Shown: positions 6,242 to 64,000, counted from the stretch's first letter. The stretch: DNA of 64,000 nucleotides from Octopus sinensis (GCF_006345805.1 NC_042997.1:146816001-146880000), one strand, 5' to 3'. Notes: a model not told the origin generated them from the letters alone. A program made the numbers and translations.

Positions 6242-6304
<63 letters not shown>

Positions 6305-6569
6305 TAATATAAAATAAATACACACACATAAATCATATAGAGAATATTGTATATATAAATATGTACATAAATCTCTCTCTTTCTGTGTGTATATATAATA
6401 CAATATATAATATATATATATATACATATATATATATACTATATATTATATATATATATATACATATATATATATCATATATATATAATACATAATATAT
6501 ATTATATATATATAATATACATATTATATATACACATATATATATATATATATATACATATATATATAC

Positions 6570-6644
<75 letters not shown>

Positions 6645-6679
6645 TATATAATAACATATATATATATATATATATATAT

Positions 6680-6715
<36 letters not shown>

Positions 6716-6739
6716 ATATATATATATATTATATATATA

Positions 6740-6790
<51 letters not shown>

Positions 6791-6794
<4 letters not shown>

Positions 6795-9605: not shown

Positions 9606-10753
9606 TTTGTATAGAGTTAAATAGTAATATGAAATAAATTATTTACTATAACAAAAATTAAATTTAAGATATCAAATAAACTTGGAGTTCTATTCATTCA
9701 CTTTTGATTAAATTTTGAAGTTTTTGTTAAGGGAAATATGAAATAACCGTTACTTACTGTTGCTAAAAAATATAATATATTATCGGTTTAGTCCTCACAA
9801 AATTTCCTTCCTGGCTCTTCTGTTCTTAGATAAAGAAGAATTTTTTTCTTTTTTTATTTTTGCTTTTGTGGTTTGGGCTTTTTTTTTAACGTTTTTCCAA
9901 TTTTTGAAGCAAAGACATCTCAACACAAAAACAGCTGGGTACATTCTTGATATGTGTTGCTTTTTGTTGTTGTTATTGTTGCTGTTGCTATTGCTGTTGT
10001 TGTTATTGTTGCTGTTGCTATTGCTGTTGTTGTTGTTGTTGTTTAACTCCAATCAGCCCTGACCGAATAGCCCCGCCATTGGAGATGTGTTCGTGTTCAT
10101 CTTTTCCTCTCAGACTATTGCATTTAGGATAGACTTATCCAAAACGACTTTTATCTCCCTTCTTAAACTGTTGGGCGTGATTTGAGATAAATTGGTTTAC
10201 TACTTTTAGCAGGTCTAACAACCACATAAACCCTCCTTCTCACTCTCTTTTTCTCTCTCTCTCTCTCTTTCTTGTAGTAGCCTCCTTCGCCACATTCTAG
10301 TTAACTAGGTTTTTACTTCATAAATACAATCTCAGATTTAGCTTAGAGTCAGCTAAAGTAAAATCAACAAACCCATTCAGCTTAACTGAAAATAGAACTG
10401 CCTTAAGTGTTTCAGATCTTAAAAATAAAAGATAAAAAAAAGCAACGAGGTAAATCCGTGAGGTGAAAAATGTGCCTAGTTAGAGGTGAGAAACGCCTTC
10501 AGATTTCTATGTGTGAGTGTATGTGTGTGTATACATACATACATACATATATACATACATACATACATAACTATATATATATATATTACATACAATATAA
10601 CATATATATATCTATTATATATATTATATATATATATATATATATACATACATATATATGTGTGTGTATGTGTATATATATATATTATATATATATACAC
10701 TATATCATATAATATATAATATTTTATATACATATATATATATATTATTATTT

Positions 10754-10797
<44 letters not shown>

Positions 10798-10965
10798 TTT
10801 ATATACATATATATTTATATACATATATATTTATATACATATATATATATATAATTATATCATATTTTATATACATAGATATCTATATATATATATATAC
10901 ATATTTATATAATTAATACATATATTTATATACATATATAGATATATATATATAATATATATATA

Positions 10966-11006
<41 letters not shown>

Positions 11007-11284
11007 TTTATATACCTATATATATATATATATTATATTATATATATATCGATATATTATATCTATATATATATATATATATATATACATACATACAGAT
11101 ATACATATATACATAAATACTCTCCGACTGGGGTTGTACCTTCATGCCCAGTCAGATTCAGTGCCATGATGATTATCCAATATAGGAGATTGACACAATG
11201 CACACGTTTGTACTTTTCTTTTGGATTTTCAGAAAAGCTGTGTAATGCAACATTTGCTTCTATTATTATCCTAATGCGCCGGAC

Positions 11285-28087: not shown

Positions 28088-29421
28088 GGGTTCCGTAATG
28101 GAAGGGACTACCTAACACAGCTCCTGCATCACTTTGATGACATTTTGAGAGCTTTGGGAGAGGGCTCCAACACCGATGTCATCTACCTTGATTTCAGTAA
28201 GGCCTTCGACAGGGTCGATCACAAGATCCTATTGAAAAAACTATCCAACATTGGTGTCTCTGGAAAGTTACTGAAATGGATCAAGTGTTTCCTGACAGAC
28301 AGATCTCAACATGTTGTAGTTGAAGGGGTAAAATCAAGCCCAGCCAAAGTCAGTAGTGGCGTTCCGCAAGGCACTGTGCTGGGCCCACTTCTTTTCATCA
28401 TCTACATTAATGACATCAATGACATCATCAAGCACAGCAACATAAAAATCTTTGCAGATGATTCCAAGCTACAGAAGGTCATAAATGAGGCGAGTGACCG
28501 GACATGCCTTCAGTCAGATCTACTGGCTGTTATCCAATGGGGAGAAAAAAACAATATGCTGCTGAACGAGGATAAATTTGAGTTAATCCACTTTGGCAAA
28601 GAGGATGCCCTGAAACTCCCATACTCCCTTCCTTCAGGTGAAACTCTCGCGGCGTCCAACAACATCAGAGACTTGGGAGTAATTGTGGACAACAACATAA
28701 GCTGGGCCACTCATATAAACACCAAAGTTGACATGGCCCGCAGAATGTGTTCCTGGATTCTCAGAACTTTCCAGTCGAGAGATATCCACACCATTATCCT
28801 TCTCTTCTCCACTTTTGCCCGACCCCACCTTGAATACTGTTGTCCACTGTGGTCTCCCCACACAATACAAAGTATCATAAAAGTTGAAGCACCTCGAAGG
28901 GCAATCACAAGAAAGATAGATGGCATGACAGGCCTCGACTATACTAGAAAAGCTAAAACTTTATTCTCTCCAACGTCGTCGTGAGCGCTACATCATCTGC
29001 ATGATGTGGAAAATATTCCATCAGCATTGCCCAAATGATGTTGGCATCACCTTTAAGGTACATCCAAGGCTTGGGCCCCGTGCCATCCGCCCAAAACAAA
29101 AATCGCACTCTCATCTCATAACAACAATACGGCACAATTATTTCACCTCTATTGGCCCCGCTCTCTTTAACATTACACCAAAACACATTAAAACAGAAAC
29201 TGACCCTATAGGGTTCAAGAAGTCTTTGGACAGATTCCTTCAAGAAATCCCGGATAAACCCCCTACACCCGGATATGTCTCTGTAAACAATAACTCTCTA
29301 CTTGAGTGGGCCATAGTGCCCAAATTCTGACTTGAAAGACTTCACCAGGTGGTGCTATTAAGTTAGACATGGCCTGGGCCAATAATGGCCGAAACCTATC
29401 AAAGTATCAAAGTATCAAAGT
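28088..29421 (+). mobile_element. 5'-truncated CR1/L2-type LINE with reverse transcriptase
   Basis: GFRNGR..LTQLL, VIYLDFSKAFDRVDH, GVPQGTVLGPLLFIIYIND, FADD; one frameshift near 28940; stop at 29330; (ATCAAAGT)3 tail; inserted in (TA)n. Confidence 0.92.
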
Positions 29422-39997: not shown

Positions 39998-40811
<814 letters not shown>

Positions 40812-54801: not shown

Positions 54802-55057
54802 TTAGGATTGCTTTGTATGTTTTTGTGCCGTAATCCAGATTTCATCATCTGGTTTAGTAACCAGTCCGTAAACAGGAGTGACAACCTGACCTTTAACAAG
54901 ACCCAAGCGGAACATTCTCAAAATCTTTGTGATACAAATGCTGGCACATACATAATTTAGTGCACGCTTTGGATCTCCGTTTTTGCCATAAATATCAAAA
55001 GGTTGGAAAACTAAACCAGATTTGGCCTTATCCTCAGCAAATCTTTCTGGATCAAAC
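54802..55057 (-). CDS. CYP20A1: CYP20A1-like last coding exon (PERF motif, heme loop, stop)
   Basis: tttcag acceptor, phase 2; FDPERFAEDKAKSGLVFQPFDIYGKNGDPKRALNYVCASICITKILRMFRLGLVKGQVVTPVYGLVTKPDDEIWITAQKHTKQS*; the GQV..Y.LVT...E.WIT C-terminus is CYP20-like; TAA at 54804-54802. Confidence 0.9.
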
Positions 55058-55626
55058 CTGAAACAAAAATAAAAATTATAAAATCAGAATCCTTATATAC
55101 TGTATATGTCCACCATTCAAACATCATAACAATGTCAATGAAGAGAATATCGTTTGCCATCATTGTTTTAATCTCCACTTTTCTATGCAACCATAGGTGA
55201 GATGGAATTTATTGGGGCAGATTTTTCTACAGCTGGATGCCCTTGTTGCCAAATCTCACCTGCTTCCAAGCAAGGTGATATTTCCCAATAGCTAAACATG
55301 TTTTTTCACAGAAGACAGGAAACAAACAACATTGCTTGTATGACAATGATGTTCATTTCAACCATCGTATGATATCTAGACAAGGGTACACACAAACACA
55401 CACATATATATATACATACACACATATACATACATACACACATATACATACATACACATACATATATACATACACATCATCATCATCATCATCATCGTCG
55501 TTTAACGTCCGTTCTCCATGCTAGCATGGGTTGGACATGTATACATATATATATATACATACACATATATACATATACATATATATATAAACATACACAT
55601 ACATATACATACATACATACACAAAC

Positions 55627-55717
<91 letters not shown>

Positions 55718-56712
55718 GATGAGCTTCTTTCAGTTTCCATCTACCAAATCCACTCATAAGGTTTTGGTCTGTCTACGTTTATAATAGAAGACACTGACCC
55801 AAAGAACCATGCAGTGGGACTGAACCCAAATTTCCAAGATTAGGAAGCAGGCCTCTTAACCACACAGCCAATGCCAGCACCATCATACATAAATAAAAAC
55901 TATCATGATGAGATCTATCACAAAGCTCATCAGTTCAGTGACCATCCAGTCCTGCAGCTTTCCAACCTGAGATCTACAATACTTGTACCGGGGTCTGTGA
56001 ACCATGTTCAAAACTTTAAATGGCTGCAGTGTAAAATGCGTGATTATTCATTTATATATTTTATTATTACTGAATCACACATCATTACCACTCAGTTGCA
56101 CATTATTATTCTCTACATCATTTAATGTCTGTTTTTCCATGCTGGCATGGTTTTACAAGAGCTGGCAAGGCCAGAGTCTGCACCAGGTTTTGGCTCTGTT
56201 TCTACAGGTGAATGCCCTAATGCCAACCACTCTACAGAGTGTACTGGGTACTTTTTATGTCACACCATCATACAGCGCTTTTTACATGGCATCAGCGCCC
56301 ACACCAATACTTTATTTTTACGTGGCACCTTGGTTTCAGGATATCAATTCTGTTGTGATGGATATGCGTTGAGTACAGCAATATGCCAATTATCTTTTTA
56401 CACACTTATTTTCTTACACAATCAGTTACAGATTACTATTATTCAATTACATATATTTTTTTTTAGCCAGGATGAAACGGGTGGCAAACTTCTTAACCAT
56501 ATATCCATGATAGTAACCTTGTACTATAAGAATTTAACCTCAAGACTTCTATAATACAATGGTTTAACCAAGCCTTGTCACACATTTGTATGTTTCTATG
56601 CTAGTATGGTTTTTTTATTCTATGAACTTGGACACCATCATTACAATATGTTACAGCAATTGACTTATTAGATACTAATAATGCTAACTAAAAATAGAAA
56701 ATTTAAACATAC

Positions 56713-56777
56713 TGAGTAGGAAGAGGCCAATATTGTTCTTCTTGCATTAGGACACCAATAGCATGAAGGATAGGAGT
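56713..56777 (-). CDS. CYP20A1: CYP20A1-like short exon
   Basis: cttcag acceptor, gtatgt donor; 65 nt, phase 0-2; TPILHAIGVLMQEEQYWPLPT(Q), resembling vertebrate CYP20A1 TLVLYALGVVLQDPNTWP (recalled). Confidence 0.9.
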
Positions 56778-58895
56778 CTGAAGAAAGAAAATAAATAAAT
56801 AAATAAAGATTAAGCTATCTGTATTAAAACATTTAATGAAAGCAAAAGAACAATTTAAGTGATATTCTTGTGTGTACTTTAAAAGACAAAACATGGAGCT
56901 ATGAAAAGATAACAGTTTATGAAATAGTTACACATTTATTTCAACAAGGTAAAAAAATTTTCCAGAAATAAATATTCATCATAATCATCATCATTTAACA
57001 TCTATTTTCCATACTGTTGTAGGTTGGCTGGTTTGCAGTCAAAAGACTGCCCCAAGCTCTGTTTTGGGCTTCGGTATGGGTTCTACAGCTGGATGCTCTT
57101 CCTAAAGCCAACCACTTTACAAAATGTACTGGATGATTTTTACATGGCACCAGCATCAGTGAGATCACCAATTAACTTGCAGGACAAGACCCCTCAACTA
57201 AAGTAGGAGTAGTATTGAGGGGCAGAAAAAGTTGTCTAGAAGTAGAGGAGAAACACGGCTATCTCAGGTGGAGAAAAAGTGGACAGAGAGAGAGAGAGAT
57301 GGTAAGGAAGTGATGAGATAGGGGTGCATACACCCAAGTTACAGGGAAGTGTATCATGTTAAGTGGACAGGGGATAGAAAAGTAGGTGGCTAAGTTCACG
57401 AGATTGCAAAAAAAGAGTGAGAGATGGAAGGAGGAAGGAATGTAGTGAATGGGCATCCCTCACCAAAAAAACAACCATGAGCAGCACTCAACTAAACCCT
57501 TATAGTTGCTCCAAATGTTAGGCCTTACTATCAATGAGGATCTCTCCCAGAGAAGTATATCTTAAGCCAAGATAACATCCCAAAGACTGGCTCTTTTCTT
57601 TGCCATCAACCCCTATACATTACTGCCTTGAGCCAAAGGACTTGTAGGGTTGGTTACAAGGCTTCCATGGTGTGTAAATGACTGGGATTACAACCTTTCC
57701 TTTCAACAGGACACCAGTTTGTCACAAGATGACTCATTTACAGTGGAGCAGACTGGAGCAACATGAAATGAAGTGTTTTGCATAAGAACGCCAACACACG
57801 ACCCAGCCTGAGAAAAGAAACCACAAGCTTGCAATCAGGAATGCAACACCCTAACCACTAGGCAAGAAAATGTTTCAGCCCAAATCAGTTGCTAACACTT
57901 TATAAGGCTCGAGTGAAGCCCATAATAGAGTGTTATGCCCACATTTGCTGTTATGGACTGCCTCTAGAAAGCCCACTCAACTGATTGGCATTAAATCACT
58001 AAGAAACACACTCCAGCCTCTGGCCAACAGGCATGCTGTTTCTTCTTTCTGTCTTTTCTATTGTTACTATAATAGATACTAGCTAGCTCCATGCCATCCA
58101 AAATTATGGCTAATTGTAATATTTTATATATAAGGTACATAATAACACATACAAACATTCACATATTTTCTTAGTACACACACACATACATAGAGTTGAA
58201 ATGTTGTTTGATATTTTTTCACCACTTCCTTCCTTATTCATCTATCACCCCTTCCTTTGTCATTTGTATGTTGTGACAGAGAAAGACAAGAATATTATTA
58301 TAGTAGATTGTTCCTTAGAACTGACTGGTCTTATTCCTTCTCCAGGGGAGCACCACCAATCCTCTTGGCTCTCCACAACTCATTATCCCATCCCCAAACT
58401 TAAATAACCATATGCCCAGTCCTCTCTCCCTAGAATACCAGCTCCCTCTGGAATCTACTTGCTTATATCATTCCTGTTGGTTGATGACCTGAAGCAATTT
58501 TTTAAAAATATTAATGGCATCAAGATCACCAGTCTCAGGACCTACAAAGGCCCTTTCCTTTATATTCAACCAGTAAAATAAAAAAAGTCACATTACTCCT
58601 AAAACCCTGCAAAAATAAACAACCCCTTCCCCTAGGTATTTATCAGTGCATTTGTAAATGAGCCGATCAATGCAATTGCAGCTATTTTTTTAATATATAG
58701 ATGTTCATACAGATCCATTGAAAGAGATAAGAACACAGACCTTCAGTTACAAATATCTATTATCCTCATCAAAGCCTGAGAACAGGATTTTAAAATTCTA
58801 ACTTAAAAATTGAATGTTAGTTGAAATAAATAATAAAATTTTATGAAGTAAAAAAAAATTAAATTAAAGATAAATTTGTAATATAAATATATTAC

Positions 58896-59007
58896 ATTTT
58901 TGGGAATTTTATGTCCTTCAAGTTCTCCATCAAAACTCTGGGTGTAGGCAGACCATTGAATTAACACAGCACATCGATGAGTTTCATCCAACACTTGCTT
59001 CAGATAT
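58896..59007 (-). CDS. CYP20A1: CYP20A1-like exon (K helix, ExxR)
   Basis: acttag acceptor, gtaata donor; 112 nt, phase 2-0; YLKQVLDETHRCAVLIQWSAYTQSFDGELEGHKIPKN containing ExxR (ETHR). Confidence 0.9.
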
Positions 59008-59659
59008 CTAAGTAAAGAAGAAACAGGTGAAAACAGAGAATTTATTCCATTCTTTTGCAGACATATTTCTAACAAGAATATAATATAACAGCCTTTGTGT
59101 TTTAATTTACAAAATGGATAGGATGGGTCATCACAATCTGTATCATCTTGCACACACAACAACACAGAAGGCCATCTGATTTGGGTGAAGTGTAACATGT
59201 AGGTGCAAGCAATAGGTACACGGTAACTTTTAGGTACATGGTCTAGTGGTTGCACTTATGATTGCAAGATTGCAGTTTCAATTCTTAGGCCAGGTGATAT
59301 ATTGTACTTTTGAGCAAAACACTTCATCCAACATTGCTCCAATCTACTCAAGCTGTAAATGAGTAACTTTGTAACAAACTGGCATCCTGTTCAAGTAGAT
59401 TGTTGTGATATCAGTCATTTGTATGCCATAGAAACTGTGTGACCAGCCTTATGAGTCCTAGAACTCGAGACACTAATGTCCAAGGGTTGATGTTGACAAA
59501 GAAACTTCTTAATCAAACTGCCATACCTGTGCTACAAATTTAATGGATCCCGTTATCAATTAGAATAACTTTTCTGACACTGCCAATCAACAATCTACTG
59601 CCTTCTTTTCAAAATTCTCAATGAAGAATCTCTATGCAGCATAAAGTACAGAACTAGAA

Positions 59660-60050
59660 CATCCTCATCAGCATTTTAATGTTCACTTTTCCATGTTTGC
59701 ATGAGTCAGATGGTATTTGTTGAGGCAGATTTTCTACAGCTGGACACACTTCCTTTCATTAGCCTGCATCTGTTTCCATGCAAAGTCAATATTTCCCCAT
59801 GACAGACATGTCTCAATACATCATCATCATCATTTAACGTTCGCTTTCCATGATGGCATGGGTTGGATGTTTTGAGGACTGGCAAGCCAGAAGGTTGCAC
59901 CAGGCTCCAACCTAATCTAGCAAAGTTTCTACAGCTGGATGTCCTTCCTAATTCCAACCACTTTGAGAGTGTAGTGGGTGTTTTTTTACAAGCCACTGAC
60001 ACAGGAGCCAGTCAGGTGGCACTGGCAACAACCACATTCATATGACGCAA
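59660..60050 (-). mobile_element. RTE-type LINE 3' UTR copies with (GAT)n tail
   Basis: catcatcat-ttaacgt..ccatg..ctacagctggatg; same orientation at 55140-55380, 55475-55537, 56105-56385, 56985-57200 and 60972-61195. Confidence 0.7.
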
Positions 60051-60309
60051 AACCAAAGCTATGTAGGGCTATAGGCTGACTTATGACCAAATCGACTTAC
60101 AACCAGTCAGTCAGAACCAACAGTGGTCGTAAGTCAACAACGACCTGTATATATATAATGGGTTTCTTTCAGTTCCTCTACCAAATCAACATACAAGGTT
60201 TTAATCAATTTGGCATTATAGAAGACACTTGCCCAAGATGCCAAGCAAGTGGAATCAGATATATAAAGTTTGAGAGGGAATATAGATTAAAAAAAAAAGC
60301 ATTCCTTAC

Positions 60310-60427
60310 TTCAATTTTTTAAGATTCTCTGGAGTAATTTCATCATCTGTCAGAGTTTGTACTTCTTTTGTAAGTTTGGTTTGTACATCACTATGAGTAG
60401 CAAGGAAATATAACAACCAAGTCAACA
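60310..60427 (-). CDS. CYP20A1: CYP20A1-like exon (end of I helix, J helix)
   Basis: tttcag acceptor, gtaagg donor; 118 nt, phase 1-2; LTWLLYFLATHSDVQTKLTKEVQTLTDDEITPENLKKL(K), a typical P450 I/J segment. Confidence 0.9.
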
Positions 60428-62059
60428 CTGAAACAAAAGTTTGAGAAGCATTAGAGAAAAAGAAAATGTTTAGAGACAAAGAAGCTAAGTTAAAGGGTGA
60501 CGAAACTGGGGTTTAAGAATAAGCTTGTTTGAACCAGACTGCTCTCAAATGATGAGTAAAAAGAAGATGGGGGAAGACACACTGAATAATGTAGTCCTAG
60601 ACATACAATGTCTAAAGAAAAAAAACCCAAGATGTCATGGTTGGAACACGCTAAACTGCAGCCCTGCAGAGTTTTAGTAGAACAGATCAACCCCAGTACT
60701 TATTTTTAAACCTGGTACTTATTCTATCAATGCCTTTAGCCAAAATGCTAAGTTACAGGGATGTAAACAAACCAACCAGTTAACCAGCAGTGGGGTGGGA
60801 CAAACACAGACACAAAGACACACACACACACACACACACACACATGATAGACTAACCATACAGCCATGCCTCTGATAACATTACTTTGCTTTTATTCTTT
60901 GGTTAGTTTAGTCAAAGAAGGAGCGCACATTGGTTAAGAAAACAAAAACAATAATGGAACCAGTTTGAACATCATCATCATCATCGTGTAACGTCTGTTT
61001 TCTATGCTGGCATTGGATGATTTCACTGAGGTCTGGAAAGTCAGTGGCTGCACCAGGCTCCAATATGATCTGGCAATGTTTCTACAACTGGATGCCCTTC
61101 CTAATGCCAACCACTCTGAGAGTGTGGTGGATGTTTTTTAAGTGCCACCAGCACAGGAGCCAGTCAGGCAGGCCTGGCATAGATCACATTCAAATAGTGC
61201 TTTTACGTGCCACTGACATGGACAGGGCCATCACTAAGCCCCTGCAACCCCTGCGGTCATAGGGCCCCATGTTGAGATCAAAGTATGTAGATGAGTTATC
61301 TATTTACTTTGGTTAAGATGTTGGACAAGAATTAAATTATCTATGTTAACTGAAAATTTCAAGAAATAAAATGGTAATACATTGTACCTGCAAAAGTTCT
61401 TGTAAAAATATTACATTGTACCACGAACGTGTACCAGACTTTGTGGATTGTCTATGATATCTATTGAACATGAACTTAGCTCTCAGCTTGATTATTCTGA
61501 ACTGATCGATGATTTCGCGAAGCCAGAAGTGTGCCGTGTTTGTCTTTGAAAGTTGCTTGGATTATAAAAGCGCTCTTTTATTCATATCTGGAAGTTTTAC
61601 TTACTGAAATTTGTAATAGACCTAAATAAATTTAACTTGTACTTTTAAAGATGTTCTTTAGGATAACGTGAAATATTGAACTTCAGATAGAATAAAGTAA
61701 AATATAGCTATGAATAAAAGATGTGTAGATTATGAATTTTGATTTAAGGGATGTTAATAAATGTTACCTTTACTGATAGTACTAATTGACAGGAAACTTG
61801 TTATAAGTTATTTGCAGAGCTATACTTAAGTTAGAGTAATCAGGTAATTCATGAGAAAAAATATGTCCATATAGAAGAGATCACAATGGAACAAGTTGTA
61901 GAGGATATTGCAGTTTAATCAAGCCCCAGGCAAGATATTGCACTAAAAGCCCAAAAAGAAACCATGATGTTGCACTGAAAGCTTACCAAACCTACAGAGA
62001 GAGGCTGCACCACAAATTCGTGGAGGACTGCTACAATACAAAGCCATGCAGAACGGCTA

Positions 62060-62765
62060 CAAATACAGATCCATGGAGAGATGCTACCACTACAGACCCA
62101 TGGAGAGCTGCTGCCACTACAGATCCATGGAGAGCTGCCACCACTACAGATTCATGGAGAGATGCTACCATTACAGATGCATGGAGAGCTGCCACCACTA
62201 CAAATTCATGGAGAGATGCTACAACTACAGATCCATGGAGAGCTGCTACCACTACAGATCCATGGAGAGCTGCTACCACTACAGATCCATGGAGAGATGC
62301 TACAACTACAGATCCGTAGAGAGCTGTTACCACAATAGATCCATGGAGAGCTGCTACACTACAGATCCATGGAGAGCTGCTACCACTACAGATCCACGGA
62401 GAGATGCTACCACTACAGATCCATGGAGAGATGCTACAGCTACAGATCCACGGAGGGATGCTACCACTACAGATCCATGGAGAGATGCTACCACAACAGA
62501 TCCATAGAGAGCTGTTACCACAATAGATCCATGGAGAGCTGCTACACTACAGATCCATGGAGAGCTGCTACCACTACAGATCCATGGAGAGCTGCTATCA
62601 CTACAGATCCATGGAGAGCTGCTATCACTACAGATCCATGGAGAGCTGCTATCACTACAGATCCATGGAGAGATGCTACCACTACAGATCCATGGAGAGA
62701 TGCTACCACTACAGATTCATGGAGAACTGCTATCACTGCAGATCCATGGAGAGATGCTACTGATA
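62060..62765. repeat. 27-bp minisatellite (agatccatggagagctgctaccactac), ~26 units, intronic
   Basis: Direct reading; two 26-bp units shift the frame; lies between the CYP exons at 62947 and 60427. Confidence 0.95.
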
Positions 62766-62946
62766 GAAATCTATGGTCGGATGCTATATAGAGACTAAAG
62801 CAGATCTCTCAACCCCATTGTAAGAGTACACTACAAATCACAACAAGCAATGCCAGTATTAATATAGTGGTAGGGTGTAGCACAAGGAGAGCAATAAAAT
62901 TTTGAGAACAGAAATAAAAACAGCGAATTGTTAAATGAGACATTAC

Positions 62947-63126
62947 AGCAGCCAAGAGTATGAAAATCAAACATCATTGTCATGAAGAGGTCCATAACTA
63001 TTTCACTATCAGCTGCATCAGTCTTCAACAAGAAATCAATTAGCAAGGAATTCTCTGGAGAAACGGTTGGCTGGTCACGGCGCTTTGTAACAGCATCTTG
63101 CAGATATTTCTCAAGAAAATTCTGAG
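62947..63126 (-). CDS. CYP20A1: CYP20A1-like P450, internal exon (G/H/I-helix region)
   Basis: tttgcag acceptor, gtaatg donor; 180 nt, phase 1-1; (A)QNFLEKYLQDAVTKRRDQPTVSPENSLLIDFLLKTDAADSEIVMDLFMTMMFDFHTLGC(L); joins in frame to the next exon. Upstream exons are outside the window. Confidence 0.85.
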
Positions 63127-63250: not shown

Positions 63251-63755
63251 ATGTTCAGAGGCAAAGTGGCTGAGTTCCTTTTGAGTGGGCCTCACAGAGG
63301 TGAGGTGGTTGAGATCCTTTTGAGTGTTGGGCCTCACAGAGGTGAGGTAGCTGAGATTCTTTTGAGTAGGCCTCACAGAGGTGAGGTGGCTGAGTTCCTT
63401 TTGAGTGTTGGGCCTCATGGAGGAAAAGTGGCTGAGCTCCTTTCGAGTGTTGGGCCTCACAGAAGCAATGACCAAGACCTTTGGCATTATGTCGTGCTTG
63501 CAAAGAAGACTGATCAAGCCGTGCAAAGTCGCAGTTGTGGCAGATACTAATGTTGAGCAAATGGCACCCAATCTGGTGGCACACAAAAGCACCCATGACA
63601 CTCAGAGTGGTTGGCATTAGGAAAGGCATCCAGTTGTAGAAAGCCATGCCAAATCAGACTGGAGCCTGGCACAGCCTTCCCGTGTGCCAGCCCAGTCAAA
63701 CCGTCCAACCCATGCCAGCATGGACAACAGATGTTAAATGATGAGGATGATCATG
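63251..63755 (+). mobile_element. RTE-type LINE 3' end with tandem amplification of the last coding segment
   Basis: ~39-bp gaggtg..gagtgttgggcctcaca units x5, then LGLTEAMT-/DLWHYVVL-like end, UTR and gatgaggatgat tail. Confidence 0.7.
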
Positions 63756-64000
63756 ATCAACATCCCTAAATATAACAATAACAGAATAAAATGGATATTA
63801 TCTATTAACATTCACAATTCAGGGGGAAAAGGCAGACAGCCAGCCCATTACACTAAAAGTACTAAAGAAAAGGAAAGCAGCCATGACTAATGGGTCACTG
63901 CAAGCAGAGGCGTATTTATCATAGCCAGATGTGTTTTTCACAGGTGTCTGTAAAAAAACAGCATCACTTGTATGATGGTGATGCTCATTTGCAACCGTTA

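Follow-up and report, generated by a model that had tools for sequence, protein, structure and literature searches.

The CYP20A1 orthologue of coleoid cephalopods lacks the heme-ligating cysteine and is probably conserved for a non-P450 function

The present study concerns a gene on the minus strand of a 64,000-nucleotide stretch of Octopus sinensis DNA (GCF_006345805.1 NC_042997.1:146816001-146880000; the whole stretch is referred to as the window), in which positions 54802-63126 encode the C-terminal part of the cytochrome P450 (P450) CYP20A1. Working P450s need the cysteine of the FxxGxRxCxG motif as ligand of the heme iron. The octopus protein has an aspartate in this position and, in the sequences compared here, loss of the cysteine extends over both coleoid superorders, the octopods and the decapodiforms. 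Together with intact reading frames, strong purifying selection and spliced transcripts, this makes it probable that the coleoid CYP20A1 orthologue is a conserved protein of P450 fold without heme-thiolate chemistry, held by selection for a function other than that of a P450.

CYP20A1 is the last orphan among the human P450s, with no known substrate; it is found from sponges to humans, usually in one copy, is strongly expressed in the brain and gives behavioural phenotypes when mutated in zebrafish (PMC8669017). Weak P450-type activity on artificial substrates has been described for the human protein (cited in PMC8669017). A first inspection of the window, made from its nucleotides alone (the sequence-only reading), had pointed to a CYP20-like P450 lacking the axial cysteine and had proposed that it is either a pseudo-enzyme kept by selection or a P450 whose heme is ligated differently.

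Results

Replacement of the axial cysteine

The comparison set comprised 62 CYP20 proteins from outside the cephalopods, covering sponges, cnidarians, echinoderms, hemichordates, amphioxus, vertebrates, arthropods, annelids, nemerteans, bivalves, gastropods and a chiton. All of them (62/62) have Cys in the position following FGFAGKRx, and the next residue is Pro in 98%, as in the cnidarian CYP20A1 heme loop FGFAGKRKCPG (PMC8110760). The family motifs given by the sequence-only reading, PFGFAGKRxCP and (A/G)GFHT, match both the real sequences and the published description (PMC8110760), and its placement of an Asp (GAT) at the Cys position is borne out by the alignment, which puts Asp412 there.

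The six coleoid proteins of the alignment have Asp-Pro or Arg-Leu in place of Cys-Pro, and a seventh locus, the genomic L002, has His-Leu. The heme loop reads PFDIYGKNGDP in three Octopus species and PFDVYTKNGDP in Argonauta hians, both with axial Asp; PFAFADKRTRLA in an intact protein of 470 residues from Sepia esculenta (P0180) and PFAHADKRTRLA in a 472-residue product of two further RNA sequencing (RNA-seq) runs (P0184), both with Arg; and PFAFADKRTHLA, with His, at L002. The family loop FGFAGKRxCPG is accordingly represented in coleoids by FDIYGKNGDPK, FAFADKRTRLA or FAHADKRTRLA, and the axial residue is encoded by GAT (Asp), CGT (Arg) or CAT (His). The protein P0180 was assembled from run SRR20545806, assigned to Sepia esculenta by a paper's data statement, and L002, P0184 and L005/L006 are termed decapodiform-like by similarity only (86-88% identity to the Sepia protein). 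The cysteines of the downstream YVCASIC segment in the octopus protein are absent in decapodiforms, where the segment reads QLYASIH.

A search of the window in all six frames, using tblastn with Cys-bearing CYP20 proteins and a motif scan, gave no alternative last exon that would bring a Cys into register and no second copy of the gene. The same Cys-less state occurs in four octopod assemblies and in several independent transcriptomes, and assembly error is therefore ruled out as its source.

Assignment to CYP20A1

The 242-residue product of the window exons is an exact match to residues 227-468 of XP_029643419.1, annotated as cytochrome P450 20A1 of O. sinensis. The description as CYP20-like was thus right as to family and can be refined, this identity making the gene the annotated CYP20A1 orthologue itself. 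The same C-terminal half is carried by P0013, a protein of 468 residues from an exhaustive profile search, whose cluster contains O. vulgaris 'cytochrome P450 20A1-like' along with XP_029643419.1 and O. bimaculoides XP_014772315.1, both 'cytochrome P450 20A1'. The annotation already names the gene CYP20A1 but does not flag the missing P450 cysteine.

In Pfam, the window product hits the p450 family, PF00067, at model positions 214-440 (E=1.6e-27). Over 98-99% of its length, the octopus protein is 44-46% identical to the CYP20A1-like proteins of Tubulanus, Crassostrea and Mytilus, which is the range for bivalves, gastropods and nemerteans, against at most 26% for P450s outside CYP20; in P450 nomenclature, membership of a family usually requires at least 40% identity. 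It is placed inside the CYP20 clade, with coleoids monophyletic, in a neighbour-joining tree of 67 sequences, a distance tree without support values. Motifs specific to CYP20 are present (GNLxDI..GSLHEFL, GHKIPKNTP, GQVVTPVYGLVTxP..EIW), and the N-terminal anchor is also kept. At the position of the I-helix acid, the whole family has His, coleoids included, as has been noted for CYP20 before (PMC8110760).

No Nautilus sequence turned up among the CYP20 matches. Two Cys-bearing proteins, P0202 and P0211, were considered as nautiloid candidates and rejected: they adjoin the coleoids in the neighbour-joining tree, but are nearer to bivalves and nemerteans by BLAST. Separately, a full-length CYP20-like transcript (P0088/L010, Logan SRR8490977), whose nearest named relative is a cnidarian CYP20A1-like protein at 37% identity, has the heme loop FGFSGK---PAVKY in which the RxC segment is missing, a Gln at the β1-4 Arg position and a normal I helix, GAFHTTG. 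This single contig may stand for a separate loss of heme binding, or may be an artefact of assembly or splicing.

Changes elsewhere in the heme site

Coleoid replacements were screened at 62 alignment columns conserved to at least 85% among the non-cephalopod CYP20s. Eight are altered in six of six coleoids (P97S, P342Q/E, R346Y/T, V365I, L369I/V, G405D/A, C412D/R and R464H/L), and further changes of the heme loop are confined to one of the two clades (F406, G408, P413, and R410N in octopods). Among heme-site columns set a priori, 7 of 8 are changed in coleoids, as compared to 12 of the remaining 54 (Fisher p=0.0007); under the stricter criterion of a change in all coleoids, the proportions are 3/8 and 5/54 (p=0.06), and the enrichment is then only suggestive.

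The structural register was taken from HMMER alignments to CYP3A structures, in which positions 346, 410 and 123 correspond to CYP3A4 R375, R440 and R130, and FDFHTL aligns with A305-G306-Y307-E308-T309-T310. In CYP3A4, the three arginines contact the heme propionates, and A305-G306 lie on the distal face of the heme. The β1-4 propionate Arg, that is, the Arg of AAR after the K helix, is Tyr or Thr in all coleoids (Tyr346 in O. sinensis). The Arg of the heme loop is Asn in octopods, and decapodiforms keep the KR of the loop. The Gly-Gly of the I helix of other molluscs is Phe-Asp in coleoids; the I-helix Thr is kept, and the (A/G)Gx(D/E)T(T/S) motif is not matched. The E-R-R triad of ExxR (ETHR) and PERF is invariant in all aligned CYP20s, coleoids included, and coleoids also retain Arg123 of the C helix and the membrane helix at the N terminus. 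By these alignments, the axial ligand and one of the propionate clamps are missing from both coleoid clades, and the second clamp is missing from octopods.

The overall fold is predicted to be preserved. An AlphaFold2 model of the O. vulgaris protein, computed from an alignment of 48 CYP20 sequences, has a mean predicted local distance difference test score (pLDDT) of 87.1 and a predicted template modelling score of 0.87, and comprises an N-terminal helix (residues 2-22) with the full set of P450 helices; Foldseek gives template modelling scores of 0.75-0.81 to CYP3A4, P450 BM3 and CYP51. The blocks of lowest confidence are residues 401-410 (pLDDT 54), 391-400 (69) and 91-120 (66-73), corresponding to the heme loop and the B-C region. 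In a control prediction of the Cys-bearing Crassostrea virginica orthologue from the same sequences, these blocks score 92-94 and 91-95. The low confidence of the heme loop is in weak agreement with a loosened heme site.

These observations bear on the alternative that the protein continues to bind heme by non-thiolate ligation, with Asp412, the axial His of some squids and cuttlefish, the I-helix His or water as ligand, and with a task in peroxidase-like activity, sensing or heme carriage. The preserved fold, C-helix Arg123 and I-helix His-Thr are in its favour, as are the occurrence of a His-bearing lineage (L002) and the conservation of the heme loop inside each clade, with a ratio of nonsynonymous to synonymous substitution rates (dN/dS, omega) of about 0.10-0.12. 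Against this, the axial residue differs by clade between Asp, Arg and His, and Arg is unable to ligate iron; the β1-4 propionate Arg is gone in all coleoids and the loop Arg in octopods; and a bulky Phe-Asp stands where Gly-Gly packs on the distal heme face. The absence of the YVCASIC cysteines from decapodiforms speaks further against altered ligation as the sequence-only reading had framed it, and we regard a non-thiolate heme protein as unlikely.

Copy number

A different explanation would be that the Cys-less gene is a neofunctionalised duplicate, and that a Cys-bearing CYP20A1 elsewhere in cephalopod genomes keeps the ancestral enzymatic role. Multiple copies of CYP20 do occur in other lophotrochozoans (four listed for Tubulanus, two for Babylonia). 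In a profile search of 5.8 billion proteins that included annotated O. sinensis, O. bimaculoides, O. vulgaris and Argonauta, however, the cephalopod clusters were all Cys-less, and an exhaustive search of representatives gave no Cys-bearing cephalopod cluster. The window holds neither a second copy nor an alternative exon, and CYP20A1 is single-copy in vertebrates (PMC8669017). A word-indexed protein search gave no Cys-bearing cephalopod CYP20 either, but it missed the identical Octopus cluster that the profile searches listed, and absence from the word-indexed search is therefore weak evidence. By these searches of annotated proteins, a Cys-bearing paralogue appears improbable.

Selection, reading frames and expression

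Synonymous sites are saturated between octopods and decapodiforms. Within the clades, dN/dS is 0.11-0.12 for O. sinensis against Argonauta (242 codons; synonymous divergence, dS, 0.7-0.8; bootstrap 95% range 0.07-0.17), 0.07 for Sepia against L005 at full length (470 codons; dS ~0.9-1.0; 0.05-0.10) and 0.13 for L002 against Sepia (243 codons; dS 0.5; 0.08-0.23). Cys-bearing, oyster-like transcripts used as baseline give 0.085-0.12 (468 codons; dS 0.5-0.7); the coleoid values are similar, and so there is no overall relaxation of constraint. When the Sepia-L005 pair is scanned in sliding windows, the nonsynonymous divergence near the former heme loop is about threefold the gene average, and omega there is 0.10-0.12.

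Stops and frameshifts are absent from the window exons and from L002, L004, L005 and L007. The RNA-seq contigs of Sepia esculenta (SRR20545806) and of L005/L006 are full length and intron-free, and spliced mRNA therefore exists. One transcript contig (L001, Logan SRR8281668) has a frameshift at 884-893 in a run of ten A, which splits the CYP20A1 frame into two overlapping open reading frames (ORFs). The stretch is in frame in P0180, which has 10 member sequences and is 99% identical to the L001 product P0001 in the C-terminal half, and in L002 as well; the shift in L001 is thus a homopolymer variant or error and not a sign of decay.

That the gene is an ordinary, slowly decaying pseudogene, or an artefact of assembly or annotation, is very unlikely. 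Loss of the catalytic Cys is what one would expect of a dead P450, and the broken frame of L001 could be read likewise. Opposed to this are the intact ORFs and the preserved splice sites and phases of all genomic loci examined, the equal heme loop in three Octopus species with the Cys-less state also in Argonauta and the several transcriptomes, the uninterrupted frame of P0180 and L002 across the L001 stretch, and an omega of 0.07-0.13, far below 1, with upper bootstrap limits of at most 0.23. The value near 1 that the sequence-only reading had named, along with lack of expression, as the mark of an ordinary pseudogene was thus not found. Adenosine-to-inosine editing recodes many coleoid transcripts, but the genetic code excludes it as a means of restoring the Cys codon in the mRNA: by A-to-G change, GAT would become GGT (Gly) and CAT would become CGT (Arg), CGT has no A at the site, TGT or TGC is never reached, and the Sepia RNA-seq contigs do read CGT.

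Gene model and surrounding sequence

The five exons of the window (Table 1) are the 3'-most of about 11 coding exons, the 5' half of CYP20A1 lying past position 64000. An AG precedes each exon and a GT follows each internal one, and the frame is free of stops; the phases are consistent, with split codons T|TG, AA|A and CA|G, and the frame closes at the TAA of 54804-54802. The features described by the sequence-only reading, namely five cleanly spliced exons free of stops, intact ExxR and PERF, the heme loop PFDIYGKNGDP, the I-helix MFDFHT and the downstream YVCASIC, were each located on the minus strand where it had put them. The window DNA is 100% identical to chromosome CM016859.1 of GCA_006345805.1 over the 10,199 bases compared. 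In Argonauta, where the comparison covers the five C-terminal exons, the exon lengths are those of Octopus (180, 118, 112, 65 and 256 nucleotides) and the phases are likewise kept, and at L002 the five exons are intact with phases equal to those of Octopus, including that of the first.

Table 1. CYP20A1 exons and key sites in the window, numbered from its first nucleotide (nt, nucleotides)
Feature	Position	Strand	Basis
First exon within the window, residues ~226-286; I-helix FDFHTL at 62971-62954	62947..63126	-	AG/GT borders, phase, identical to XP_029643419.1
Exon of 118 nt, remainder of I helix and J helix (LLTWLLYFLATHSDVQTKL...)	60310..60427	-	Splice borders; length kept in Argonauta and L002
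Exon of 112 nt, K-helix ExxR = ETHR at 58985-58974, Tyr346 (TAC) at 58946-58944	58896..59007	-	HMMER register to CYP3A7/3A4
Exon of 65 nt, encoding TPILHAIGVLMQEEQYWPLPTQ	56713..56777	-	Splice borders, phase
Last coding exon: PERF at 55050-55039, heme loop PFDIYGKNGDP at 55002-54970, L helix, C-terminal sheet, TAA	54802..55057	-	Alignment with 62 Cys-bearing CYP20s
Asn410 at 54981-54979; Asp412 (GAT), the axial-Cys position, at 54975-54973	last coding exon	-	Alignment with 62 Cys-bearing CYP20s
YVCASIC	54954-54934	-	Motif coordinates in last coding exon

An O. vulgaris isoform, P0158 (CAI9716097.1, 426 residues), departs from the last exon behind ...KRALNY, has the terminus HLYDVHL, and so is without the L helix, the C-terminal sheet or a heme Cys.

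The introns of the gene contain several repeats. A minisatellite at 62021-62760 (27-bp unit, TGGAGAGCTGCTACCACTACAGATCCA; 27.5 copies, 87% matches) lies between the first two window exons and gives rise to long spurious plus-strand ORFs, and a tandem repeat with a 42-bp (or 81-bp) unit in about 5 copies occupies 63266-63463, in the intron upstream of the first window exon. An interspersed repeat with the core TCCATGCTGGCATGGGTTGGA, often placed after a CAT/CATCGT run, occurs at 55513-55536, 59845-59868 and 63703-63726 (three copies with at most 3 mismatches, 0 expected); all three are in CYP20A1 introns, both orientations are represented, and more diverged copies are visible by eye. Downstream of CYP20A1, a 279-residue ORF at 28145-28984 (+) matches reverse transcriptase (RVT_1, E=1.5e-20) and is a fragment of a retroelement resembling long interspersed nuclear elements. 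AT/TA dinucleotide and ATAC/ATGT microsatellites of up to ~375 units (e.g., 888-1332, 6242-6791, 10530-11119, 40032-40776) account for most of the window 'ORFs' above 110 residues.

Discussion

Based on the collective evidence, the coleoid CYP20A1 is best understood as a probable pseudo-enzyme in the sense of a P450 fold kept under selection after its heme-thiolate chemistry was given up, as would follow from the sharing of the Cys-less state by octopods and decapodiforms, the intact frames, the dN/dS of 0.07-0.13 and the spliced transcripts of Sepia esculenta. Of the two explanations offered by the sequence-only reading, it is the conserved pseudo-enzyme that gains support. A single conversion in the coleoid ancestor, near the base of Coleoidea, is the likeliest origin of this state, and the shared I-helix FDFHTL and P342Q/E point there. 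The codons at the axial position can be arranged in a series of single steps, TGT>CGT>CAT>GAT, which would allow for a single loss and later drift of a site no longer important. The resulting protein is expected to bind no heme, or no thiolate-ligated heme, and should have none of the weak P450-type activity of human CYP20A1. We suggest for it a non-catalytic binding or scaffolding role, anchored in the membrane of the endoplasmic reticulum (ER), by which it probably carries on a heme-independent part of CYP20A1 function.

Relative to CYP20A1 elsewhere, orthology, CYP20 motifs, anchor and I-helix His are the same. Coleoids differ in that Cys-Pro is replaced by Asp-Pro (octopods) or Arg/His-Leu (decapodiforms), the Arg of AAR by Tyr/Thr, and Gly-Gly by Phe-Asp. 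The proposed mode of action would resemble that of Cys-less P450 homologues of actinomycetes which activate a partner enzyme. EryCII, DesVIII and AknT are heme-free homologues of this kind that activate glycosyltransferases of macrolide and anthracycline synthesis and are kept for this non-catalytic partner role (PMC3391682, PMC10054333); the former heme site of EryCII is mobile (PMC3391682). These proteins have in common with the coleoid one a P450 fold devoid of the heme Cys, and the mobile former heme site may be compared to the low AlphaFold2 confidence in the octopus loop. They differ in being bacterial, soluble and of independent origin, and in that the activated partner is known for them; furthermore, EryCII is without the C/C' helices, whereas the octopus protein is membrane-anchored and has all elements of the P450 architecture. 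As a descendant of animal CYP20A1, the coleoid protein can resemble the EryCII type by functional analogy, not by membership. Among eukaryotes, some of the oomycete P450-peroxidase fusions CYP5619D are without the Cys of the CxG motif (PMC5919972). The P450 domain is recognisable and the Cys missing in both cases, but CYP5619D is a lineage-specific fusion family whose heme motif is generally degenerate, while the coleoid case involves a deeply conserved, apparently single-copy animal orthologue.

Several points weigh against the interpretation of coleoid CYP20A1 as a protein devoid of heme-thiolate chemistry and selected for another function. The proposed loss of heme binding is deduced from sequence, and the retained Arg123, the I-helix Thr and the loop KR of decapodiforms may signify weak or differently ligated heme binding. 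The confidence dip in the AlphaFold2 model is weak evidence because Cys-bearing sequences dominate the alignment, so that the dip is partly expected. The searches covered annotated proteins, and a Cys-bearing copy missed by annotation is possible. For the Octopus gene itself there is only the RefSeq model, the transcripts coming from relatives. Lastly, the non-catalytic role proposed is a generic one, CYP20A1 function being obscure in every animal (PMC8669017).

A search of the literature on CYP20 or CYP20A1 in cephalopods or octopus gave no match, which is not proof of novelty. As far as our searches reach, the coleoid protein would be the first conserved P450 fold without the Cys to be described from an animal, adding to the bacterial glycosyltransferase activators and the oomycete fusions. 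Its automated label, 'cytochrome P450 20A1', gives no warning of a loop incompatible with the enzyme. The study has importance in showing a whole animal clade whose orthologue lacks several heme contacts and a residue that P450 catalysis cannot do without, and yet evolves no faster than in the Cys-bearing relatives. The coleoid case points to a heme-independent role of CYP20A1, and comparison of the octopus and cuttlefish proteins with those of oyster and vertebrates gives a handle on it. As a more tentative extension, which we consider possible but rather doubtful, the conserved function of CYP20A1 may itself be non-catalytic, consisting in the sensing or sequestering of a ligand or in scaffolding at the ER membrane. 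If this were true, coleoids would constitute a natural separation-of-function experiment, with heme-thiolate chemistry gone and constraint undiminished, and the near-empty outcome of decades of substrate screens on vertebrate CYP20A1 would be explained.

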